Part shown: positions 12,899 through 54,157 of the stretch, piece by piece
Layout: each line of letters begins with the position of its first letter
Position numbering within the stretch: the stretch's first letter is position 1
Assembly: GCA_001643675.2 (NCBI GenBank)
Contig: LSRY02000037.1
Location: forward strand, 806,001 to 870,000
DNA from: Monocercomonoides exilis PA203
Lineage: Eukaryota > Protista > Preaxostyla
Length of the DNA: 64,000 nucleotides
Reading direction: 5' to 3'
Notes under the pieces: generated by a model
The model's input: the letters and a program-made list of their open reading frames with translations, nothing else
Told to the model about the DNA's origin: nothing
Database searches by the model: none
Translations under genes and position numbers: made by a program

Positions 12899-15800
12899 TC
12901 ACTCTGCTTTTTTATTGAAGAATGCAAATAGCTTCTCCTTCGATAGAAGAGTGCTCTGTATCTCCTTCAGCGCTGCTGTCTGGTCAGCCACTTTTCTCGA
13001 AGAACGCCGTTTTTTCACTGAACTTTGCGGTTTTTTGCCAGAAGCCGAAAAAGAAGAGGAAGAGGAAGAGGAAGGAGAAGAAGATGAACGGGGCATTGAC
13101 AAAGGATGGAAAAGAGAAGAAGAGGAAAGCTTTGGGTTTGGCTTGTTGATCACTCTTCTGCCAGTCATAGCAACAGCATTTGCTATCTGCAAAGAATGCT
13201 TGTTTATTTGGAGGTTGGATGAAATAGGAGAGGAAGAAGAAGTCGATGAAGAAGAGGAAGAGGAGGAGGAAGAAGATGATTGATGGAAAAGAAACGGATT
13301 CAACAGTTCCGAAGACGCAGAATTTGCTGGATCCAATGAAAAAATTGTATTCAATGGAGAAGAAGAAGAAGAAGAAGACGACGACGACGAAGAAGAAGAA
13401 CCAGAACTGCTTCGTCTCGAATGGCTTGTCTGCATCTTCGTCTCCACCCCAGGTGAAGCTGCTGCTGTCTCAGTGTGTGAATGGTGCAAGAACGAAAATG
13501 CCATCTTCCCTTCGCTCTCTCCCAGCACATTCTGCAGCGCAGTTTGAGACAGCCTCGCCAGCACACTCAGACTGGGAGCAGATTTGGCGAGGAGAGGCAA
13601 AGCAGCGTTTCGGATGCCTGGGATGTGTGTGGCGATGGCACAGGGCAATTGACTCAGAGCATCAGGTGCTTCAGAATGGAAGCTCAAGTCGCCATCTGGT
13701 TCGTTTTCGCCTTGTTTTAAGTCTCTAAAAAGCTCAACAGTTTCAGAAGGGTTTTGGGTCCAGACGATGCGAAGGGAAGGGAAGTGGAGGGAGAGGAGGA
13801 TTAAGCGCCCCGCAGTGGAGTGCAAAGAGGAGAGAGATTCGTTCAGTTGCTGCTGTTGATGCTGCTGTTGTTGGAGGCGCTGGAAGGCAGAGGAGGAGGA
13901 AGAAGAAGAATAAGATGAGGAAGAAGAAGAAGTAGATAAGTCACCAAAAGAAGAAGCAGGAGAAGCAGAAGCAGGAGAAGAAGCTAAACTTCCATCAAAC
14001 AATGCACTATTCGACCCACTCCAGTTGTGTGACGGGACAAGATCACCTGTTGCCCCGTCTTCTCTGTTGAACCCGAACTCAATCAGCAGCACAGGGACAG
14101 CATATGCCTTTGTGAGAGCAGTGGCTTGCTGGACGAGTCTTCCTGAGTGAAGAGACTGAGACAAATCTGAAGGGGACTTCCTCTCTATGCATATTCGGGG
14201 GGAAAGAACATAGTCTCCAATTTCGATCTGTTTGGGGACGACTTCGAAGCCGCTGCGGTGGAGGAGGAGGGGAAGGTGGGAGCGGAACTCGCGCATGTCG
14301 ACAACGATGCGGGGGCGGATGGGGTGGAGGAGAAGACGGGTGGAGAGAGGAGAGGGAAGAGAAAGAGAAGGAAGAGAAGAAGAAGAAGAAGAGAGTGAAG
14401 ATTTTGAGGGAGAAGAAGAGGAGAAAAGGGGATTTTTGGAGGGAGTTGTTTGAAGAGCAACAGTATTTGAAGAAGAAGATGTTAAAGTATTGTTAACCTC
14501 CTTTGGAATAACTTTTGACTGATTAGCTCCTTCAAAATCATAAATTGCATCTGACTCCATTTTATTTTTATCTTCTTCTTCTTCCTTCTTTCCCTCTTCT
14601 CCTTCATTTCTTTCTCTTTCTCCTTCTCTTTCTTTCCCTTCTCTTATTTCCTCTTTCTCCTCCTCCTCCTCCTTCTTCTTCTCCTCCTCTCTCACCGGCA
14701 GCACCCTCTTCGGAATCACCAGCGACTTCTCATTCTGAATGAGGCTGTTGAATGCCTCCGTCTCTGCTTTCACCCTGTTCACATACAGCTCTTGCTCTAT
14801 GCTCTCTGAATAAACTACAAAAAACAGGTCTGATATCGTCTTTTGATAAGATGGTTGTGGAGATGAGGAATTTTCTTTGTTTTTATCTTTATTTTTGTCT
14901 ATAAGTTCTTTATCAAATGCTGATTCTTGTCTCATTTTCATTGATTTTCCATCTTTGTCATCATCATTATTATCGTCATCTTCATCACTGCTATCCACCT
15001 CCATCAACCCCTTCTTCCTCTTCCTTCCTCCTCCTTCTCCTCCCCCTTCTTCTTCCTCCATCCTCCTCCTCCTCTCCGCCCTCTCCTTCCACAGGGGGCT
15101 TCTGTGTGTTGCATAATACATCTCCACCTGCCTCAACGAAAGCACGTCTGGCTCAGCAATCACCACAAAATGAGGGTGGAATCGGTTCATCAGCATCAAC
15201 AGCTCATTCGATGGAGTCGCCAGGCAAAGAAGAGGAACACACAATTGCTCAGCTTTTACTGCTGCCTTGTGGAAACGCTGCTCAAAGAACAGGTTTGGCA
15301 GCTCATCAATCTGAGGGAAGGAGAATGGAACGCAGAGAGGGATGTTATTTTCTTCTTCTTCTTCTTCATTGGCAGAGTGAGAGGAAGAAGTTTTGTGAGA
15401 AGAATTTTTCTTCGTATTCTTCTTCTTCTTCTTTCTTCTCTTCCTCTTTATCTTTCTCTTCTTTATCTTCATCTTTATATTTTTTATCTTCATTGTCTTC
15501 ACTTTCTCCATCTCCCTCCCCCTCTCAATTCCTCCATATATTTGGTTAATACTGCCATTCCCTTTGAAACTATCTGATAAACTTGTATTTGTCGTGTTAG
15601 GGGACAAGAACGAGTTGTATCTTTCTGTGTTTGAATTCTCATTGAAATCATTTCCTTCTTCTCCTTCTCCTTCATCTTCTCCTCTTCTTTCTTCTTCATC
15701 TTCTTCAAATCCTTCGTGTTCTGTTGCAATAACATCATCGTCATCTTCATCGTCATCACTGTCTTCTTCTTCTTCTTCTTCTTCATCCTCTTCCTCCTCT

Positions 15801-18800
15801 TCACCTTCTTCATCATCATCTTCTTCCTCATCTCCATCATTTCCTTCTCTTCTTCCTTTTTCTTCCTCTTCATCTGAATCATCTCTATCAACATTTCCTT
15901 TCATTTTCTTCTTCTTTCCTCTTCTTTCCCTTTCATCATCATCATCATCATCTCCCTCTCCTCCTTCTTCTCCCTCTTCCCCATCTCCCTCTTCTTCCTC
16001 TTCTCCTTCTCCTTCTCCTTCTCCTCCACTGCTCATCCACCTCTTCTGCCCTCCCAATGCTGTTCCTTCTAACAATTCTCTTTGCAAATCGTCTTCAAAA
16101 TTCCTGTCTTCAGAATTCGCCATCTGTGTTAGGATTTCTATTGCTTGCGTCTCATATTTATCCCTTCCTTTCATTTCTTCTTCCTCTTCTTCTTCTTCAT
16201 TCTTCTCTTCTTCTTCTTTATTTTTTTCTTCTTTCTCTTCTTCTTCTCTTCCTTCTTCTTCTCTTCCTTCTTCTCCTCCTCCTTCCTTCTTATTCTCCAC
16301 CTCTTTCTTTTCTCCCCAATCCTTCACCCCCTTTCCTATTCCTATTCCTATTCCATTCCCTGTTCCATTCACTCCTATTCCTCCTCCTCCTCCTCCTCCT
16401 CCTCCTCCATATCCATTTCCTTTTCCATTTCCTATTCTTCCTCCATTTCCTCCTCCAACCCCCAGCCTCGCCCTCCTCCTCGCCTTCTCTATCGCCACTT
16501 CTCTCTTCCTCCTCGCCTCCTCCTCCATCAGCAGGCTTATCTGCATTCTTCTAGCTGCCATCGACATTTCGTAGCGGTTGAAGGAAGAAGCAATGGAGTT
16601 GATGTACTCTCTGCTTTTGAGCTGCTTTCGGGCCATTGTTTTGATGACTCTGCTTGTGACGGAGTCAGAAATGAGGAGAATGCGCTTGAGCGTGTCGGAG
16701 GGGTGGTATTGGGGAGGAGAAGGGGGAGAGGAGGTGGAAGAGGAGGAGGAAGAGGAGGAAGAGGAACAGGAAGAAGAAGAAGAAGATGATGATGATTCCA
16801 TTTGATTATCAGACATTCCAGACATTTGTTCCATCACTTCAGAAGCAGCAGCCTCAACAGCAGAAGCAGAAGCAGAAGCAGAAGCAGAGAAAGAGGCTGA
16901 GGCTGAAGCAGAATCATCAATCACAGTCAACTCATTCTTTGGCTCCTCTGCCTCCTTTTCCTTATTATTTTGATCAATCCCGTAATCAAAATTGAAAGGA
17001 GAAGAAGCGACGTGGTCGAGCGGGGGATTTTCCGGCTCAGATTCTGCACATTTTTTGATTATGGCCTCGATCTCTTTCCATTTTGGGTTTTCTTCTGCAT
17101 TTCGATAGAAAATGTGTTGGATGGTTTTTTCTTTGCGGGTGGCGGTGGAGAAAGGAGAAGGAGAAGGAGAAGAGGAAGAGGAAGAGGAAGAAAGGGAAGA
17201 GGAAGAGAAGGAAGAAGAAGAAGAAAGAGAAGATAATGGAGAAGTTATAGAGGAAGAAGATAATGAAGAAGATAATGATGGAAGAGAAGAAGAAGAAGAA
17301 TTTGAAGGTGCTGTTGAAGGAACAGCTGAATTCTTCCGTTGCATCTGACGCAGCTTCAGCAAGAGAAGAGGAGAAGGTGTAGGTTTCTTCTTGGCTGGTT
17401 GAGGAGATAACAAGGAAGAAGAAGAAGAAGAAGAAGAAGAAGAAGAAGAAGAAGAGGAAGAGGAAGAAGATGAAGATGATAGAGAAGAAGAAGAAGAAGA
17501 AGAAGAAGAAAATGAAGAAGTTTGTTCAATTTTTTGATTTTTGGAGTTAGGCGATTGAGAAGAATTATCAATATCCATTTCATTCTCTTTCTCTCCTTCT
17601 CTTCCATCTTTCTCCTTTTCATTTCCTTTTCCTCTTTCTTCTTCTTCCTCTCTTTTCTCCTCTTCTTTCTCTTCCACATCATCATCATCTTCTTCTTCTT
17701 CATATGAAGCACTTCCATCATGATAGTCATCTCCAAAAACTTCCACTTTTCTCGATTTCCTCTTCTTCAATTTCTTCTTCTTATTATTCTTCTTCATATT
17801 TTCATTGGTACTATTTTCTTCTTCATCTTTCTCTTTTTCTCCTTCTCCTTCTCCTTCTCCTTCTCCTTCTCCTTCTCCTTCTCCTTCTCCTTCTCCTTCT
17901 CCTTCTCCTTCTCCCTCTTCCATCTTCTTCTTCCTCTTCTTCCTTTTCTTCATCTCCTTCCCTTTCTCCTTCCTCCTCTTCCTCTCCTCCCTCTCTCTCC
18001 TTCTCATCTCCTCCCTCACCCCCATCGCTATACCCTTCGCCAGGTTCCTCTCCTTCAGCACAGCCGCCTCTGCCCCTGCCCTCTCATCTGCCAAGCGCAA
18101 AAGCGACTGCGCGGCTGGCTGGCTTGCCCAGAGCGGGAAAAGAGGGGAGAATGGAGCAGCTAATGTCCGCATTATCATGCTCGCCGCAAGGAGGCTGGTG
18201 GTGGCGGTGCGGGCGGACATGAAGGTGTGGAGAGAGGCGAGGGCGGAGGTGGAAGAAGAAAGGGAAGAAGAGGAGGGAAACGTGGAAGAAGAGGAAGAAG
18301 AAGCTGTAGAAGAAGAAGAAGAAGGGAATAAAGATGATGATTGAACAGAAGAAGCTATCCCATTTCCCAATCCAACCCCAATCCCTTGCTGTCCAGTCCC
18401 AAACCCCCTGGGTGCTGGAAGCAGCGACGAGTCCCCCTGAATCGCGCGATGGAGGAGGTTTCTGAATGTGAGGGCATCTAACCGTGCCAGCCCAAAGGCG
18501 AGCCGGCGCACCAGGCGGATGTCCCGCAACAGGGACCACGCATTCTGAGGGGTCTGGTGCCAGGCTGAAGACATGCGCTGCAGAAACAGCCTGTCAAAAC
18601 GCGTGCTCAGGGCGTCTTGCACAGCAAATGACATGTCAGATGCACTTTCGTCGTTGGACTCCTTCCGTTTGACCATGAGCGAGGCTTCGCGTAAGCAAAA
18701 CTCCAGCAGCTCAGTTATGTGTTTCTGCATTTGTTGCATGATGGGGGACATCGAAACGTGGACTTCTGTGACTTTTAATCCAGAAGAGTCTAAATCAATG

Positions 18801-19366
18801 CAAACGTCATCCCGAAAGCGAGGCCATAACATGAGCGTTTCACATTGCAACGTTGCCATAGCCTTACCTATTGCATTGAACCCACGAGTGAATGCACTTG
18901 GTACAGTTGAAACTGCATGAATAAATCCAATTTGGTTTTTTTCTCTGAACATTTCAAGAACAAAGCTATCAGGCGACATATCAGAAATTTGATGTGCATC
19001 TAATACTATTATCCCAGAAATGGAATGCATTGGAACAACATTTCTAAGTATATCAACAACAAGAATACGTGTAGAAACAGAAAAGACGCCTCCTTCTAAA
19101 TATAAAGCAGCTCTCTCAGAAGAATTATACGAAGCATTTAATCTTTTTGGATAAATCTTTCCGTCAATTTCTTGAAGGCTAAATTGATGGGAATGAGAAT
19201 CATTAAGAATGAAAACCAATGTTTTGGATTTTGCATTAAGTTTGATAATTGAATTGATAATTAAGCGTGGATTGAGTCCAGAACCTAGAATAAGAAGGGA
19301 ACTTTTATTAATTAATAGCTGCTTCAGAATTTTCAGAATAAAAGAAGTGGGCCTGTCAGATTCCAT
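12899..19366 (-). CDS. ERCC4: DNA repair endonuclease XPF/Rad1/ERCC4, greatly expanded by low-complexity insertions
   Basis: Helicase-like N-terminus (RAALYLEGGV, STRILVVDIL, LWPRF, EENPKW, RQVEMY). ERCC4 nuclease core IVVDMREFRS...GDYVLSPRICIERKS..DL..SL.SGRL. HhH-like region HIPGI. First ATG at 19366. Confidence 0.95.
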   Translation of the reverse strand: MESDRPTSFILKILKQLLINKSSLLILGSGLNPRLIINSIIKLNAKSKTLVFILNDSHSHQFSLQEIDGKIYPKRLNASYNSSERAALYLEGGVFSVSTRILVVDILRNVVPMHSISGIIVLDAHQISDMSPDSFVLEMFREKNQIGFIHAVSTVPSAFTRGFNAIGKAMATLQCETLMLWPRFRDDVCIDLDSSGLKVTEVHVSMSPIMQQMQKHITELLEFCLREASLMVKRKESNDESASDMSFAVQDALSTRFDRLFLQRMSSAWHQTPQNAWSLLRDIRLVRRLAFGLARLDALTFRNLLHRAIQGDSSLLPAPRGFGTGQQGIGVGLGNGIASSVQSSSLFPSSSSSTASSSSSSTFPSSSSLSSSTSALASLHTFMSARTATTSLLAASMIMRTLAAPFSPLFPLWASQPAAQSLLRLADERAGAEAAVLKERNLAKGIAMGVREEMRRREREERKRRKEKGKEMKKRKKRKKKMEEGEGEGEGEGEGEGEGEGEGEGEGEGEKEKDEEENSTNENMKKNNKKKKLKKRKSRKVEVFGDDYHDGSASYEEEEDDDDVEEKEEEKREEEEERGKGNEKEKDGREGEKENEMDIDNSSQSPNSKNQKIEQTSSFSSSSSSSSSLSSSSSSSSSSSSSSSSSSSSSSLLSPQPAKKKPTPSPLLLLKLRQMQRKNSAVPSTAPSNSSSSSLPSLSSSLSSSSITSPLSSLSSSSSFSSSSLSSSSSSSSPSPSPFSTATRKEKTIQHIFYRNAEENPKWKEIEAIIKKCAESEPENPPLDHVASSPFNFDYGIDQNNKEKEAEEPKNELTVIDDSASASASFSASASASASAVEAAASEVMEQMSGMSDNQMESSSSSSSSSCSSSSSSSSSSTSSPPSPPQYHPSDTLKRILLISDSVTSRVIKTMARKQLKSREYINSIASSFNRYEMSMAARRMQISLLMEEEARRKREVAIEKARRRARLGVGGGNGGRIGNGKGNGYGGGGGGGGGGIGVNGTGNGIGIGIGKGVKDWGEKKEVENKKEGGGEEGREEEGREEEEKEEKNKEEEEKNEEEEEEEEMKGRDKYETQAIEILTQMANSEDRNFEDDLQRELLEGTALGGQKRWMSSGGEGEGEGEEEEEGDGEEGEEGGEGDDDDDDERERRGKKKKMKGNVDRDDSDEEEEKGRREGNDGDEEEDDDEEGEEEEEDEEEEEEEDSDDDEDDDDVIATEHEGFEEDEEERRGEDEGEGEEGNDFNENSNTERYNSFLSPNTTNTSLSDSFKGNGSINQIYGGIERGREMEKVKTMKIKNIKMKIKKRKIKRKRRKKKKKNTKKNSSHKTSSSHSANEEEEEENNIPLCVPFSFPQIDELPNLFFEQRFHKAAVKAEQLCVPLLCLATPSNELLMLMNRFHPHFVVIAEPDVLSLRQVEMYYATHRSPLWKERAERRRRMEEEEGGGEGGGRKRKKGLMEVDSSDEDDDNNDDDKDGKSMKMRQESAFDKELIDKNKDKNKENSSSPQPSYQKTISDLFFVVYSESIEQELYVNRVKAETEAFNSLIQNEKSLVIPKRVLPVREEEKKKEEEEEKEEIREGKEREGERERNEGEEGKKEEEEDKNKMESDAIYDFEGANQSKVIPKEVNNTLTSSSSNTVALQTTPSKNPLFSSSSPSKSSLSSSSSSLPSLSLPSPLSTRLLLHPIRPRIVVDMREFRSHLPLLLHRSGFEVVPKQIEIGDYVLSPRICIERKSPSDLSQSLHSGRLVQQATALTKAYAVPVLLIEFGFNREDGATGDLVPSHNWSGSNSALFDGSLASSPASASPASSFGDLSTSSSSSSYSSSSSSSAFQRLQQQQHQQQQLNESLSSLHSTAGRLILLSLHFPSLRIVWTQNPSETVELFRDLKQGENEPDGDLSFHSEAPDALSQLPCAIATHIPGIRNAALPLLAKSAPSLSVLARLSQTALQNVLGESEGKMAFSFLHHSHTETAAASPGVETKMQTSHSRRSSSGSSSSSSSSSSSSSSPLNTIFSLDPANSASSELLNPFLFHQSSSSSSSSSSSSTSSSSPISSNLQINKHSLQIANAVAMTGRRVINKPNPKLSSSSLFHPLSMPRSSSSPSSSSSSSFSASGKKPQSSVKKRRSSRKVADQTAALKEIQSTLLSKEKLFAFFNKKAE

Positions 19367-19953
19367 GCATTCCTTGATACTTGAATAGAAACGAAAAAAA
19401 AATATGGAAACGTTGTTTTTTTTCACTGAATCTTTTTTCTATTTGGTATAAATAAAAGTTGTAATATAATTTTCTATTCAAACGTTCAGAAAAATTTGAA
19501 TATTACTTGTTTTTCACTATGAAAATTTATTTCTATTAATTTTCTTTTCACCGAAAAAAAAATTTCTTTTTGAAATAAATAGATTCCACACAAAGATAGA
19601 GTGCATAATGTGCATTTGAAACAATTCATTAAAGTATAAAAGTGTAATTGAATCAAAGATCGATTTAATCAACAAATCTTCAGTTCCATTCAAAAATAAT
19701 GTTAAAAAAAAAATATTAAAATAAATTAAAATTAGTCATGCACATTCAAAATGTTTTGATAATTTGATGTAACCAATTAAAGTTCTATCGCTTTTCTTTT
19801 TTTCTTTTTCTTTTTTTTGAAAAAATAAATTTTTTTTCAAATTTTGGTCAAACTTCAACCTTAATTATTTTCATTTTTGAAAGTGTAACATTCAATGATT
19901 TATGGTTATTCATAATTGATCTTTTATTGAAAAAGAAGAACCACTAAAGTAAA

Positions 19954-21039: not shown

Positions 21040-22988
21040 TCACCTTCTTCTTCCTTCTTTTCCTCTTCCCCTTCCTCTTCCACCCCATCTCCCTCTTCCT
21101 CCGCCTCCTCTTCTCGCACCGCCTGCCCCCATTGCATTCCCTGCCTCCTGCTTTCTCCTTCCTCCTTTGCCATGCCTGTCATCCTCCACAAACCACTGCC
21201 TCGTTTCTCCTTCGTTCTCTTCCCTTCGCCCTCTCCCGTGTCTCCCACTCTGCTTGAAAAACGCGCCAGACGCCGCAAGCAGCGTGGCTGCATCGAGCTG
21301 AAGTGGATGCAGAGTCAATGGCTGAAACGTCCCATCTGTTGAATCATCACCTTCTTCAGCAAAAGATGCGGAGTGATCGATATCTGATTCTTTACTGATG
21401 TTTTTGGTTGCATTTGAAGCAGATGGATTGTCGGAGTCTTCGTTGCTATCACTTTGAGTGTTCTCTTCTTCTTCTTCTTTGTCTTCACCTTCTTCTTTGC
21501 TGTCTTCATCTGCTTTGTCATCTGTTTCTTCTTCTTCGTCTGAATTATCACTTTTTTTGTCATCATCTTCTCCAATTTCATCTTCATCCTCCTCATCCTC
21601 TCTTTCCCCGTCATCCCATTTCTTTTTGCCTTTTTGAGAACGTCCTTCATCATCATCTTCTTCATCATCGTTTTCGTTATCTTCATCGTCTTCATCCTCA
21701 TCCCCTTCCTCTTCCTCTTCATCACCACTATCGCTTTCATCATCCTTTCTTCTTCTGATCACTCTCAATTTGGCAGAGCGGCTGCGAGGATTTTCTGAAA
21801 GCTCCTTTTGAGACGGCAAAATCGGACGGCGAGTGACAATTTCAAATTTTCCTCCTCCTGATTTGATGATTGAATGAAAAAGAGGTTTAAAATTTCAAAT
21901 ATAACATAGTAAATAAAATAATAAAAAAATGAAATTGAAAAAAAAAAAAAATGATTTAATCATTAAGGAAATAATAATTCATCAAAAAAACCTTCCCATT
22001 CTTGTGCAAGCTTGTTAAAGCCAATTTTAACCAATCGATCTTCCAGTGAATGGAATGTTATTATTGCAGCTGTTCCACCAGCTGCAAGAACATTCGGCAA
22101 AGTACTGCAAAAACAAATAATATTTGTCAAAAATGAAATAAATAAAAAAAAATTTTCTGGAATTCATAAAGTCAAACTTGATGAGGGTATTTAGAACAGC
22201 AAGCTCTTGATTAACCGCAATGCGCAACGCCATAAAAGTTTTTGTTGCAGGATGTATCGAACTTGTCATTTTAGCTTCAAATTTTTAGATTAATTTTTTC
22301 TTTTATATGAATTTTTTATGACAAAATAGTAATTCATACCCTTTTTCGGAATAGCTCCGCAAACTACAGAAGCCAAGTGAAATGTTGTAAGAATTGGATG
22401 ACTTCCAGTGCCCTCTCTTTCTTCGACAATAGCGCGAGCAATTCTCCTGCTGAGTTTTTCTTCTCCAAAATAAAAAATAACAGCTGCAAGTTGTTCTTCA
22501 GAAAGTTGATTGACTAAATCTGCAGCTGTGTTGGGCAAAGAAGGATCAAGTCGCATGTCTAATGGGCCATCAAGTTGAAATGAAATCCCTCGAGTTGGGT
22601 CGCCAAGTTGAACAGAAGATATTCCTAAATCAGCTAAGAAGAGATCAACTCCTCGTTGCTTCAAACCCAATTTTTCCAGTACAAGAGGGGAATCTGCAAA
22701 ATTGCTTTTTACGATATTTATTTCGCATTTTGTATTTTCACTATCTTCTTTTCGAAGATTCTCAAATTTCTTTTTGTTAAAAGCAATTGCCTCATCATCT
22801 ACATCAAGTCCAATATATCTCCCTGTTTCACCTAAATGGGGAATAATTAATGATGCATGACCACCTCTTCCAAGAGTACCATCCATTACAATGTCTCCCT
22901 TTTGAGGATTCAAAACTTTTACAACTTCTTGATAAAGCACAGGATAGTGCTCTATTTCTGTAGGAGGAATGTTTTTATTTTGAGACAT
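21040..22988 (-). CDS. rsmH: RsmH/MraW (METTL15-family) SSU rRNA N4-cytosine methyltransferase with acidic and RGG C-terminal extension
   Basis: Exons 22988-22340, 22274-22178, 22104-21992 and 21857-21040. Motifs [74 protein letters not shown] and [11 protein letters not shown] are all present in order. Confidence 0.95.
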
Positions 22989-23307
22989 TATTTTTGGCTA
23001 AGGCTCGGAAAATCGAAAGTTTTATTGCTTGAATTATTTTACTATATAAAATTTGATCATCAAATATTAAATATTGAATGTTTTTAAATGAAGCTCTTGA
23101 ATTCAATAGGAGAAAATAAAAAACAAAATCTGTTGAATTCAATGAATAATTTATTTAAGCTTCATTCGAATATGGGAAAATTGAGCAAGAAAATAAAAAA
23201 TGACATGAAATGTTGAACTGTAAATATGACGTGATTGTCCAACTTAAATATGTGTCATTCATAAATTATTTGATAGTTTTATCCGAGTTGCAAAACAAAA
23301 CATCAAT

Positions 23308-24210
23308 ATGAAATTCTTTGTTGGACTTCTTTCGCTTGCTGCATTGACCGCACAATTCTGGGGAGGAATGGGAGGACTTGGCGGATTAGGAATGGGCGGA
23401 TTCGGAGGAATGGGAGGAATGGGCGGATTTGGTGGAATGGGTGGAATGGCTGACTTTGCCGGAATGGGATTTGGTGGAATGGGAGGTCTTGGAGGATTGG
23501 GTGGATTCGGATTCTTGTCTGGATCTGAACTTTCTGAAGAAGAGCTTGATGAATTGTGCTGCGGATCAAGCTGCTACCCAGACGGATGCTGCTATGAATT
23601 GTGCGCCTGTGAATCTCCATGCGGAATGGGTGCCTGTGGTGGATTTGCCCCTTCATTCGGAGGATGCCAACAAGGATTCAATGGCTGCAACGGAATGGGA
23701 TATAACGGAATGGGATGCAACGGAATGAACGGAATGAACGGTGGATTCGGAAACTACGGAAATGCATGCCAAGCCCCACGCATGTATGGCCAAACATCAT
23801 CAGTTCAAGGTGGACGTGGAGCAGCATATGCCAACGGAAACAACGCCAACTGCTATGGTGCCGGAAACAGAAACTGCGGATACAACCAGGGAGCAATCTG
23901 CGGATCAGCAAACGGTGCTCACATGAATGCTGATGCATGCCGTGCCCATGGAGATCGCGCCTACGCCAGAAAGTGCGCTGATGAAATGATGGTTCGCCGT
24001 GCCAATGAAGCATGCACCACTGGAAACAACTGCTATGACATGGGACACGCCAACATGTGCGCTGGATCACGCCAAATTGCTGGAAACCGCGCATGCGGAA
24101 ACGCCAACAACTGCTACAACAACGCAGCTGGAATGAACACCAACTCCCGCGGATGCTGCGGAAACGGTGGATGCTGCAGATCATCCAACTATGGATACGG
24201 TGGATGCTAA
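23308..24210 (+). CDS. Secreted Gly/Met/Cys/Asn-rich structural protein (candidate wall/coat protein)
   Basis: Intronless 300-aa ORF with signal peptide MKFFVGLLSLAALTA, GGMGG repeats and 28 Cys. Strong GGA/TGC/AAC codon bias. Confidence 0.8.
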   Translation: MKFFVGLLSLAALTAQFWGGMGGLGGLGMGGFGGMGGMGGFGGMGGMADFAGMGFGGMGGLGGLGGFGFLSGSELSEEELDELCCGSSCYPDGCCYELCACESPCGMGACGGFAPSFGGCQQGFNGCNGMGYNGMGCNGMNGMNGGFGNYGNACQAPRMYGQTSSVQGGRGAAYANGNNANCYGAGNRNCGYNQGAICGSANGAHMNADACRAHGDRAYARKCADEMMVRRANEACTTGNNCYDMGHANMCAGSRQIAGNRACGNANNCYNNAAGMNTNSRGCCGNGGCCRSSNYGYGGC

Positions 24211-35088: not shown

Positions 35089-37629
35089 CAGTCGGTGCCA
35101 AAGCCGATCCTAGGTGCGAAACACGAACCAAGAGAGAGAAAGAGAGAATGCAATCATTTTTCGAAGTTGTTTAATATATTTTCAATTAAAGACCAAATAT
35201 ATTTAACTATTCGTTGAAACCAGGTATTTGGCAACATATTTTGAAATTTTCTTATGAAATAACGAACAAAGAAAATACATTTTGTTTTAGCATCATTATT
35301 TGAATAGTTAAAAATAATCGATATGAAGCAATTCTACAAAAAGAAGACTTCTAGTTAGTTCCTCAAAATTGTGTGAAGGCTAGAGTTTTATGCTGCAGTT
35401 GTATTTTGATAAGAATGTTTCTCAAATGCGTTTCTCTTTCGAATTGAATGAAGGAGAAATTTCTCTGGGTGGTTGATCAAAATCTCTGTTTTCATTTTTT
35501 GAAGTTGATTTCACTTCTTTTTCATCGTCTTTGAGTATTTCAATCATTCTCTTTGCTTTTTTTCTCGATTCCTTTTTTTCCTTTGCTTGTTCTTTATTCA
35601 ACATTTCATTAAGTTCTTGTCGACTATGTTTATTCTAAGGATTCTTTTCAGAAGAAGATGAAGTTTGTTTTCTAATTTTCGTCAGCTGTTTTTGAAGAAA
35701 ATGTGAATGCTCTTTTGTTGATTCAATTTGTTTCATTAGCTCTGAATCATCCATCTCTTTTGCTTCTTCTGATGATTTTTCTTCAGTGGAATTTTCGTTT
35801 GTTGAATATTTTCTGTGATTAACAATCAATGTTGGACGTTCTTTTGTTTTTTCAGAATCGTGGAGAGATGAATGTTATGAAGATTGAACAGAAGATAGTT
35901 GTTTATTTCTATGAGGAGAATAATTCACAAACAACTCTTCTCTCCAATCTTGCGAGTAAACAGATGTTTCAGAATTGCATTTGTGAATATGGATGGGGGA
36001 TCCAGATATGCGATCCAAGACTGGGGCAGCTGCAACAGGCCATACGCCTGTTTTTTTTGAACGCTGCTTTTATAGTCGAAGGCTTTACCGCAACAACAAC
36101 TGCTTCAGGGAGTGTGTCGGCAAGGGAAGATCTGTAGGAATGAATCGAAAACGGAATAGGGACGTGAAATTTATTGCATAGAGTTGCTTTCAAACGAGAA
36201 AAGATGCACGAGTCGCACGGTTGCAAGAGATGGGTCATATTTGGTAGAAAACTCTTCAAAATAATATTGAATTTCTCTGCAAAATCTGCCACACAATCGT
36301 CTGAATGAGTTACATGATTATTCATTAGGAACAGGACTTTATGTGTCGTCGTTGGCTCAACTTTTGAAACAATCGCAGGTGTCCAGTAATTGATCATGAT
36401 GTTTTTAAATATTTCTTTTGTAATCCAACCAGATGAAGAAGGAAGAACTTTGATGTCAAATGCATAAAGCGAAGAAAATTCTTGTGGTGAACTTTTCATG
36501 GGCCAAAGGAGAAATCGCTGAAGTGAAGAGCCATCTGCACAGACATACAGACACAAAGTTGAATTAGGAACTTTTGGAGGAGCTGTTGAAGCAGGCAGAA
36601 TTTGATTTTTTAGACAATCAACCAGTTTGCTTGTGCATTCACTCAAATTCAACGAAGATTCAACAATATCAAATATTCTCGATGAATCAATGTTATTCCT
36701 GCTAATAATCTCAGACAATTCTCCAAACCACTGTCTCACATTCTCTGGCGATTGAGCTGCAATTTTTGATAACTCAATAGGTTTCGATAATGCTGCATGA
36801 ATAATTTCGCTTCTTTTTAATAGCTTGTATGCGTACATTTCGTTGAGTTTTTTTGGTTCTTTATTTTCACCACATTCTTTTTCAAGAGTATCCGTACACT
36901 TAGAAACATATTTTTTTATTGAAAAAAACCCAAAATAAATCAAACCATGTTTTGGACATCATGAACTTAAATTGTTTCTTTTTCTGATAATTTCACAAGG
37001 ACTTGATTTTCAATTATTTCGAGCTGGCGTGCATTAATCGAAAAAGAAAGCCCATCTACTCCAACATCTCTTCCTTCCTTCTCCGCTTTTACACTTCTGA
37101 ACCAAGCACCTTTCGAAATAATGTTTACACCAACAACGGTTCGCAATTTCAGTGAATGATCACGGCGTATAGCAAATATCTTTTTGGTTGTTGAATGAAT
37201 GGAACGATATTTGCAGGATGCGAGTTCGCGATGAAGTTGAAGAGGATAAAGTTATGTTGAGTAACTCATGATATACGTTGTATGATCAAATGAATAAACA
37301 TTGAAACTTTTGATTAGTGATGTATTTGTTAATTTTTAAATTTTAATAATTTATTTTTATTCGTAATATAACAAATTAAATTATTTGGATTTATTTCTTA
37401 TTGTTGTGAACACAAAAAATAAAAGATTCATTGGTTTCAAAAACATCAGCCAAAATAATGAATTGTGTTCTTGTTGTTTCTTTTAATTGATTAATGATTA
37501 TTCTAGATGCAACTGCCTTGGAAATATCTTTTATAAATTCAATTTAGAGATAATTTTACAGAAATGAACAAGATCAATGTTTATGCAAGGATCGGGTTTC
37601 GCACCAAGGATCGGCTTTGGCACTGACTG
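35089..37629 (-). mobile_element. pogo-like (Tc1/mariner superfamily, DDE_1) transposon with degenerate transposase
   Basis: ~41-bp TIRs CAGTCRGTGCCAAAGCCGATCCTWGGTGCGAAAC flanked by TA on both sides. Minus-strand ORF with CADG, SSSGWIT and THLLQPCDSCIF; catalytic Asp positions appear mutated (FDIVES, LMNNH) and the ORF is frameshifted. Confidence 0.9.
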
Positions 37630-51336: not shown

Positions 51337-54157
51337 TGGCTGTTAATCGTTCGTTATTTATAAAAGAACTTCCCGTAGGACTCCAAAAATCATTAGAGGA
51401 CTTTTCAATCGTGTGCGATAATAGCAATCATGGAACTCTTGACATTATAATTTTTTTATTAAATCGAGAAAAATGCATTCGTAAAAAAAATTGACGAATT
51501 GGATAAAGCGAATTGTAGTTTTGTTCGATTGGAATTAGCCTCCACAGATGAGGATGTTCAATGTTTCAATGATTCGTTTATTTATAAAATAATTACGACT
51601 TTTCTTTTCTTTTATCCATTAAATAAATTCATTGCCACAGGCTTCAAGCATCCAAATAGACCAGAAGAAATCATGTCTCAAATTCATTTAAAAATTCAAA
51701 ATGATCTCTTATGGATTTGCTACTATGAGGTTAAATCAGATTTCAAAACAAAAGCTGATGGGCACAGAATGTTTTTGTGTCCCAACGAAAAGAAGGGATA
51801 TGCATGCGGATGTTCAGGTAGAGAAACTTCAGCTGCAGTCAAACAACACAAATGTGCATTGTTGTCAACAACGTTGGACTTTTGGATCAATAAAAAGCAA
51901 AAAGAAGTACAACAAACCATTATTTCTATTAAAGAGCACAACCAGTCTTTTAAAGACAACAAACAATTGACAGATCAATTTTCAGATTTTGTTTCCAGAT
52001 GCAATATATCGTTCTTGTCAGCGGGTTCATCTGAGTTTAACACATTTGTGAAGAGTTTGATTCAAAAGGCACAGACAAATCCAACTGCTGAACATACAGA
52101 AATATTTCCGTATTTATCAAAGTGGAAAATAAAAAGACTAATAAACGAAAAGAAAACAACAGCAATTCAAGAAAGATCCAGATTAATAAAGGACAAATAC
52201 ATAGCTCTGATGATCGATGGAGGGAAAATCGCAAATTAAAAGTGCACAATCATTTCATTTATTATTCATGCAGAAAAATCAACTCCTGGATTTTGGAGTT
52301 TTCAACAAGCATGTTATTCTTCTGATGATTACAAAAATCTTGCTGAAAGGTGCATTTCGGAGATTGTAAATTGCGGAGGTGAAGTCAGAAGCATTTGCAG
52401 TGACGGCTTAGCAGCTCAAAAAAAAGCGTTTCAAGATTTATCACACGATTCTGATCGTGAAATCGATTTATTGAACTTTTATGTCAAACCTTTTCATGTT
52501 TATTGTTTTAATCATTTAATCAACTTAACAATCACACATTCTTTTCAAGAAGTCCCATTTCTTTAATCAATCAAGGATATAATTATTGAGTTCTCAAAAT
52601 TATCAAGGAGCTCATCAATACAACATATGTTCCCTGCAAAATGCCCAACATTCACACTGACGAGATGGTTGTGCTTGACAGATATTTGCTTGTTCATAAG
52701 GAAAAGCAGAGAAATTATATTGGAATCGAAGCTAATGGATAGTCAGAGTATTATAAATGCAATTAAAGCGGAAATTTTGTTATTCCCTTTAAAAAAGTTG
52801 CATTTATTTTTTGAAGATGACAACAGCAAGCTTGGAAATGTTTTTCCAAAAATTCTAGAGGTAATGTCTTTTTTCAATAACCTTCTTGAATTAAGCCCTT
52901 TTCGTTCCGATCATTGGCATAATGCAATTGTTAACGTTTGGATATATCTGTTCAACTACACTTTGGAAGGCGAAAGAGGGGATCTAATTGCACTCGCTTA
53001 TGCATTAACACCAGAAGGAAAAAATAAACTTATCAGTGATGATTTTTGTTGTATGTTTTTTAATTCAGAAGAAATGAGAAAAGATAGTTTGTTCAAACAT
53101 TTAAATATTCTCATAATTGATAGTTTCTTTTTTCCCCATTTTTGAACTCAATAAACAACATTTCAACTGTTTTCAAGGTCGAGCATCATCATCGTCTGTT
53201 GACTCATCATCACAGAATGAAGAAACGTGTGTTAGCAGGACCTTTGCAGAAGATAAAGAATCAACCGCTTTTCCCTTGTCTGTGAGTAGATTTCAAAAGG
53301 CATTATCAACGATTTTGAGAGATGAATCATCAACCGAGCATGTCCGTCCGAGTTCGAACAAGCAACTAATTGAGGAAAAACAAAATTCCGTAACATCATA
53401 TAAGCATATTCAGAAAGAAATTGAAGATCTCTTGTTAATTGTTTCACAATTTGAAAAGAAAGAGATTTCTTTTTCACATATGCGAGAAGAAGCTATTTTT
53501 TCAGAAAAAGAAAATGCCACAGATTATCTTGGACTCACAGAGGCAGAGGAGCAATCAGAAAATGACGAATATGATGAAATATTAAATGATGAAGCTTCAA
53601 CCCTTGTTGAAACAAGATCTTCTCTTATATCTTCTCAAGAAACGCTCAGTGACGAATCGGATTATCATGCCATAAGCGACTTCAACAAAGATGTTTACCA
53701 TGAAGACGAAGATGATGTGATTTTTGCCGGTACAAATAAAAAACTTAAAGTTATTCACGAAATTACAAAGGGGAAGGAGGATGAAGCTGTCGATTCAATT
53801 AAGATATCAATTGCATCAAATTGGTATTTCAGAATATTTAAATCATTTAATACTATTATCAATAATTCACTGGGGCAGTTAACTGAGGAAACGAGAAAAA
53901 AATTCGCATCGTTATTTAAAACTCACACACTTACTACAACATCAGTTTATTTCCTTGAGAGTTTACAGGTATATTACAGTCATATTGCATCGCTTGGTGA
54001 AGCGGAAACAATTTATGCCAACATTTGTTTTTGCATTGCAACATCTCCTTGTAGCGAATCCGCCTGTGAACGATTTTTTTCAAGACTGAAGCGAATCGTA
54101 GGTGATCATAGACATTCGCTTTCCTTTGATTCGCTAAATTCGTTGCTTCTCTTGTGA
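51337..54157 (+). pseudogene. hAT transposase, intron-containing, with nonsense codons
   Basis: LMIDGG, ICSDG, HVYCFNHLINL (CxxH), TLTRWL and C-terminal SESACERFFSRLK..RHSL (hAT dimerisation motif). In-frame TAA at 52237 and 52564; intron 53051-53177 restores the frame. The 5' start is uncertain. Confidence 0.85.

Follow-up and report, generated by a model that had tools for sequence, protein, structure and literature searches.

The window analysed here, a 64,000-nucleotide stretch of the Monocercomonoides exilis PA203 genome, carries on its minus strand a gene for a protein of the RsmH (MraW) methyltransferase family. Four collinear matching pieces of PF01795 (MraW/RsmH) were identified on this strand by a Pfam search, and the gene (23022-21040) consists of four exons separated by three introns, all of the GT..AG type. 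The exons (22988-22340, 22274-22178, 22104-21992, and 21857-21043, with the stop codon at 21040-21042) join into a reading frame whose 558-aa product does not differ from the public protein P0126. A search of the whole M. exilis PA203 assembly (82,301,135 bases, or 82.3 Mb, in 101 contigs) returned one PF01795 locus, and we identify this locus as the single RsmH (MraW, PF01795/TIGR00006) gene of M. exilis.

Exon 1 (22340-22988) encodes residues 1-216 plus one base and scores 176 bits against PF01795 over profile positions 2-193. Intron 1 (22275-22339, 65 nt, phase 1) separates it from exon 2 (22178-22274), and intron 2 (22105-22177, 73 nt) separates exon 2 from exon 3 (21992-22104); each of these two exons encodes a conserved block supported by a PF01795 piece and by RNA joints. 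Intron 3 (21858-21991, 134 nt) leads into exon 4, the first part of which (21751-21857) completes the RsmH domain at residue 322, the TIGR00006 match covering residues 13-322. The remainder of exon 4 encodes an acidic D/E-rich tract at approximately residues 323-460 (21337-21750, assigned by composition and crossed by RNA contigs), a conserved tail block at residues 464-509 (21190-21327, defined by BLASTP against the Blattamonas tail), and an RG/RGG-rich C-terminal end at residues 510-558 together with the stop codon (21040-21189, assigned by RG count). The initial annotation had closed the gene at 21770, which is wrong, because the last exon stays open to 21043.

All three splice joints are visible in RNA contigs (four runs of one study), so that the three GT-AG introns read earlier from the sequence are now borne out by spliced transcripts. 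The joints 22274/22340 and 22104/22178 occur in all four RNA runs, and the joint of intron 3 occurs in X1 and X2, its boundary being taken from sequence reading. One spliced contig links exon 3 to exon 4 as far as 21733, and unspliced contigs cover 21176-21638 with 0 mismatches; positions 21639-21732 are masked as repeat, and the last 44 codons lie outside the listed long contigs. At the other end, RNA contigs extend to 23006 (X1) and 23022 (X2) with no joint, giving a 5' UTR of at least 34 nt (22989-23022), and an in-frame TAG (22998-23000) lies inside this transcribed leader, four codons upstream of the ATG at 22988. These transcripts thus leave no place for a presequence exon further upstream. 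With the N-terminus fixed by RNA in this way, HYPVL begins at residue 14, much as it does in bacterial proteins, and the protein has no room for a targeting peptide, both as originally proposed. The published predictor scores for the protein, listed as MONOS_7035 in the supplement of PMC10703272, are likewise near zero.

The surroundings of the gene had been described as housekeeping genes, a description that is only loosely true: loci encoding an ERCC4-domain protein, a secreted-looking protein, and kinase-like proteins are found there together with transposons. A 300-aa open reading frame on the plus strand (23308-24210), divergent from RsmH across a 320 bp spacer, has a signal-peptide-like start, GMGG/GLGG repeats, and a remainder rich in Cys, Asn, and Gly, with no Pfam match. 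On the minus strand, an uninterrupted 2175-aa open reading frame (12899-19426) has the ERCC4 nuclease domain, at about residues 1709-1900, as its only Pfam match and is unusually long compared with proteins of the XPF/MUS81 type. Transposase open reading frames with DDE_1 (pogo-like) and hAT dimerisation domains lie at 35969-36943 (minus strand) and 53117-54157 (plus strand), and kinase-like open reading frames are among the RsmH neighbours in the window.

Membership of the RsmH family is established over the full length of the domain. P0126 scores 285.9 bits against the RsmH equivalog model TIGR00006 (NCBIfam), for which the cut-off is 154.3, with a match spanning profile positions 6-309 of 310, and 301.9 bits against PF01795. 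The SAM-binding GRGGH motif, DLGISS, and GPLDMRLD are all encoded in exon 1, which keeps every column that is invariant in 21 relatives, and the later motifs, including NPRSRSAK, are present in the pairwise alignment with the nearest bacterial protein. The SAM-binding and catalytic motifs are thus intact (GRGGH, the acidic D62/D64, and the DLG-type motif), and the initial statement that no RsmH motif is lost holds for the invariant columns and for the C-terminal motifs alike. A search of the ESM Atlas matched bacterial MraW clusters only. Among the matches listed, the closest named proteins are those of M. exilis, Blattamonas nauphoetae, and Streblomastix strix, the attribution to Blattamonas being based on the JARBJD accession of PMC10703272.

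Sequence comparisons place the domain close to bacterial proteins. It shares 52% identity (315 bits) with the nearest bacterial protein, which is metagenomic, and scores 193, 187, and 181 bits against the solved RsmH proteins of T. maritima, T. thermophilus, and E. coli, respectively. The score against human METTL15 is 171 bits, and the C-terminal third of METTL15 fails to align; exon 1 taken alone gives equal scores against human METTL15 and E. coli RsmH. The four-residue insertion that METTL15 carries after the DMR motif is absent from the M. exilis protein. In a careful IQ-TREE analysis (LG+C20+F+G4, 81 rows, 299 columns; bootstrap not fully settled, correlation 0.987), with similarity-driven sampling that left out METTL15, CMAL, and named alphaproteobacterial rows, the oxymonad rows group together with 100/100 support and nest with 99/99 support in a 40-row clade in which 25 unnamed metagenome proteins accompany 15 Planctomycetota, nearly all of them with Phycisphaerae titles. 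This clade stands apart from Planctomycetia, Chloroflexota, Bacillota, Nitrospirota, Acidobacteriota, and others. A quick tree built on exon 1 alone agrees with the careful tree, and the placement of the oxymonads is unmoved by 30 extra RsmH sequences from the phylum, itself unnamed, of a 'Proteobacteria' MAG (97 SH-aLRT). The tree favours lateral transfer as the origin of the gene, with Phycisphaerae-like Planctomycetota as donors and an oxymonad ancestor as recipient.

Orthologues were identified in Blattamonas (P0201), in Streblomastix (P0003), and in two environmental oxymonad-like lineages (L086; L087/L088). The position of M. exilis intron 1 is common to L086-L088, and that of intron 2 is common to Streblomastix and L086/L088; a further intron after the ADLG motif, absent from M. 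exilis, is found in Streblomastix and the environmental lineages. Identity among the oxymonad orthologues is 65-76%, and between M. exilis and L086/L087 dN is 0.20-0.25 with synonymous sites saturated. No stop or frameshift occurs in any oxymonad copy. These comparisons indicate that purifying selection acts on the conserved family residues in no fewer than five lineages of oxymonads. From the orthologues, the shared introns, and the constraint taken together, it follows that the transfer predates the divergence of these oxymonads and that the gene has since been kept by selection. No orthologue from Paratrimastix or Trimastix is among the matches listed, their genomes lying outside the search.

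Several features of the orthologous loci were noted in passing. One metagenome (ENA ERZ1667847) contains two different oxymonad-like RsmH genes, L086 and L087, which are approximately 75% identical, and the deposited protein models of L086, L087, and L088 (ERZ27234820) read through the introns. The Streblomastix strix orthologue (L005 3001-4177) has in-frame TAA/TAG codons where its relatives have Gln, which presumably reflects the known non-canonical code of this species, and the gene is truncated by the contig end within the acidic tail.

The M. exilis protein continues beyond the RsmH domain with a tail of 236 aa, composed of the acidic tract, the conserved block, and the RG-rich end, whereas bacterial RsmH ends a few residues past NPRSRSAK. 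Aspartate and glutamate together account for 85 of the 253 residues counted, and six RG occur in the last 70 residues. The 46-residue block is 57% identical to the tail of Blattamonas (BLASTP E 2e-14), in which the parts occur in the same order and the RG run likewise follows the block. The partial Streblomastix model contains the beginning of the same kind of acidic tail. In a homology search with the tail only, the single match was the protein itself. A single-sequence AlphaFold prediction of the tail has low confidence and only two short helices, which fits disorder; the longer predicted helix sits in the conserved block (residues 189-200 of the exon-4 product). The RG/RGG cluster is located beside an acidic tract, as in nucleolar GAR/RGG-tailed proteins. 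In the same genome, fibrillarin carries an RGG domain of the classical kind with 10-11 RG, so that RGG boxes on nucleolar proteins are in use in M. exilis. The acidic/RG tail looks nucleolar in type, which is no proof of nucleolar residence, and the RG run, with its 6 RG against the 10-11 of fibrillarin, is short, which counts against the nucleolar reading.

Three fibrillarin loci are present in the genome (C69:852676-853511, C35:127306-128193, and C35:306642-307476), of which C69 and C35:306642-307476, both read, encode the long N-terminal RGG domain. The Blattamonas nauphoetae RsmH model (JARBJD010000049.1, L128 4001-6933) is 812 aa long, its RG-rich tail being followed by an alpha/beta-hydrolase domain (PF12146/PF00561) that may be either a genuine fusion or a neighbouring gene merged into the model. 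Next to RsmH in Blattamonas lies a histone gene.

Metamonad organelles are not known to have a genome or ribosomes, so that the substrate of METTL15 would have been lost long before oxymonads arose, and a gene acquired within the lineage never could have served an organellar ribosome. In keeping with the initial reading, the host is an amitochondriate oxymonad, M. exilis having been published as being without mitochondria (PMC8767320, PMC10703272). A bacterial-type small subunit (16S/12S) is absent from the cell, which bears on the function of the gene and not on its homology, and neither RbfA, bS18, nor RsmI was found in the M. exilis genome. The genome has one TP_methylase match, the N-terminus of which resembles that of diphthine synthase. 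In the absence of a bacterial-type ribosome, the cytosolic small subunit would be the most economical target.

The copies of the cytosolic 18S rRNA gene were located by a 16-nt universal SSU pattern with 23 exact matches. The six copies read are identical and of eukaryotic type, and all six carry GCCCGTCGC and GCCCGTCGCTCC; the stretch with the C1402-equivalent holds GCCCGUCGC. Since the six copies keep the C1402-equivalent, the target cytidine is present. The 18S rDNA places are scattered over many contigs (for example C14:5055, 23117, and 40772; C79:17886, 35438, and 52639), often within approximately 65 kb of the first base of the contig and approximately 17-18 kb apart, a spacing and position that suggest subtelomeric rDNA arrays. 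C1402 is universal, and RsmH acts on the assembled 30S, not on naked rRNA (PMC2831307). In human 18S rRNA the corresponding residue is Cm rather than m4Cm, and yeast and Arabidopsis are likewise reported to be 2'-O-methylated there (PMC2831307); m4C in 18S rRNA would accordingly be unprecedented.

The M. exilis protein can be set against several known systems. With the bacterial RsmH of Phycisphaerae/Planctomycetota it shares the full-length domain, all motifs, and a bacterial-length N-terminus, but its gene is nuclear, with three introns and a tail that the bacterial proteins do not have, and its cell has no 16S-type ribosome. Plant chloroplast CMAL is a nuclear RsmH homologue that acts on plastid 16S rRNA in an organelle with bacterial-type ribosomes. 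It is thus, like the M. exilis gene, a nuclear gene of the bacterial RsmH type, but it is targeted to an organelle of a kind that the oxymonad does not have. The N4CMT of bdelloid rotifers is a laterally acquired bacterial DNA N4-cytosine methyltransferase fused to a chromodomain; it resembles our case as an N4-cytosine methyltransferase domesticated through an added eukaryotic targeting sequence and differs in enzyme family and in its DNA substrate. The mt-SAF14 of T. brucei (PDB 6sg9) is a MraW-fold protein recruited to eukaryotic ribosome assembly, but it is mitochondrial and very divergent (39.6 bits), whereas the M. exilis protein keeps the full catalytic signature. METTL15 is the nuclear-encoded RsmH homologue that makes m4C839/840 in mitochondrial 12S rRNA (PMC6821322, PMC7641309). 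It has the same Pfam family and chemistry as the M. exilis protein and is likewise a eukaryotic nuclear gene. In human METTL15 an extension of approximately 60-70 residues precedes the first motif, which lies at about residue 72 of the solved chain; no such N-terminal extension or presequence is present in the M. exilis protein. METTL15 furthermore acts with RBFA on the mitoribosome, and M. exilis has neither a mitochondrion nor, as far as the genome search went, RBFA.

Two of the rival explanations concern the origin of the gene. Bacterial contamination or mis-assembly is suggested by the polyxenic cultures (PMC8767320), but three spliceosomal introns are removed in the RNA, the gene lies deep in its contig (approximately 828 kb into approximately 1.06 Mb) amid eukaryotic composition and neighbours, and the orthologues of other oxymonad genomes also contain introns. 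We regard contamination as virtually impossible and reject it as refuted by the spliced transcripts, in agreement with the initial annotation. The best reciprocal match of the protein in a mitochondrial protein database, mouse METTL15 (supplement of PMC10703272), would point to vertical descent from the mitochondrial METTL15 lineage, with the gene surviving the loss of its organelle, and so would the equal scores of exon 1 against human METTL15 and E. coli RsmH. Against such a relic stand the 99/99 nesting in the Phycisphaerae-rich clade of the similarity-sampled tree, the higher score with those bacteria than with METTL15, whose C-terminal third does not align, the missing four-residue insertion, and the absent N-terminal extension, and we reject it as extremely improbable. 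Lateral transfer and an endosymbiotic relic had been left side by side at the outset; the nesting within the Phycisphaerae-rich planctomycete clade argues for a bacterial transfer and not a METTL15 relic, so that the former part of that claim is favoured and the latter is improbable.

The other rivals accept the lateral transfer and concern what the gene does. As a neutral passenger, the gene would be expressed and functionless; oxymonads carry many transferred genes (PMC10703272). However, the gene is kept in Monocercomonoides, Blattamonas, Streblomastix, and two environmental lineages, at the identities given above despite saturated synonymous sites, with intron positions common to lineages, a conserved tail block, and intact reading frames, and a passenger is therefore very improbable. 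A pseudogene is rejected on the constraint, the shared introns, and the lack of any stop or frameshift. More weight is given to a functional but re-aimed protein, with another RNA (LSU rRNA, tRNA, snRNA, or mRNA) as its target or with a mainly non-catalytic role as an assembly or RNA-binding factor. Such a re-aiming is favoured by the eukaryote-specific tail, whose conserved block is confined to the lineage and matches nothing elsewhere, and mt-SAF14 is an example of a MraW-like assembly factor. The catalysis of METTL15 is reported to be dispensable for mitoribosome biogenesis (PMC11197891), which makes a non-catalytic role conceivable. On the other side, the catalytic and SAM-binding residues are all retained under constraint, the RsmH equivalog cut-off is passed over the full length, and the family is known for one site only, which is unchanged in the host 18S rRNA. 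We consider a re-aimed protein unlikely, though it has to be taken seriously.

The reading we prefer is methylation of the cytosolic small subunit by the transferred RsmH. The enzyme would bind the late pre-40S or the free 40S from the subunit-interface side, as RsmH does with the 30S, and, with SAM as methyl donor, would methylate N4 of the C1402-equivalent, which lies at the top of helix 44 in the cytosolic 18S rRNA. The disordered acidic/RG tail may direct the enzyme to pre-ribosomal RNA or to the nucleolus. As this site usually also receives a snoRNA-guided 2'-O-methyl group, the P site would end up with an m4Cm of the bacterial type. Collectively, the gene is confirmed to be real, spliced, bacterial in origin, conserved, and tail-bearing, and the prediction of cytosolic 18S methylation is likely but unproven. 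In its specific form, in which oxymonad cytosolic ribosomes would carry m4C/m4Cm at the 18S P-site cytidine through a planctomycete-derived RsmH with a nucleolar-type tail, we put the prediction forward tentatively, with belief falling a little short of the halfway mark. Our confidence in the account as a whole, from the transfer of a planctomycete-type RsmH through the gain of introns and a tail to the putative methylation of cytosolic 18S rRNA, is evenly balanced.

Parts of this material are already public. The protein is present in NCBI, UniRef, and EukProt as a putative MraW methyltransferase, and the supplement of PMC10703272 tabulates MONOS_7035 with a reciprocal match to mouse METTL15 and gives Omnitrophica RsmH as its best nr match. 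The main text of that paper mentions neither rRNA, RsmH, nor MraW, and the 2019 genome paper does not mention rRNA. Our literature search, which was not exhaustive, found no work linking Monocercomonoides, oxymonads, or Streblomastix with RsmH, METTL15, or MraW, and nothing on m4C in the cytosolic 18S rRNA of a protist. The system had initially been called undescribed; this does not extend to the protein itself, which is annotated and tabulated, and it stands insofar as no discussion tied to oxymonads was found. What appears to be new here is the planctomycete origin, the fixed N-terminus, the conserved eukaryotic tail, the absence of a conventional substrate, and the prediction that results.

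Enzymes of the RsmH type are known to act only on the small subunits of bacteria and organelles, and here such an enzyme is conserved in eukaryotes in which both kinds of subunit are missing. The METTL15-like hit most probably reflects a bacterial acquisition and not an organellar relic, so that it no longer need count as one possible 'mitochondrial hallmark' against the amitochondriate status of oxymonads. The case is directly testable, with a defined site, a defined enzyme, and an organism that can be cultured. If the prediction is true, oxymonads would have the first nucleo-cytosolic rRNA m4C system of any eukaryote, and a lateral transfer would have rewired the decoding centre of the host's own ribosome by placing a new modification there. 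In that case, acquired bacterial enzymes would be able to plug into core eukaryotic ribosome biogenesis.
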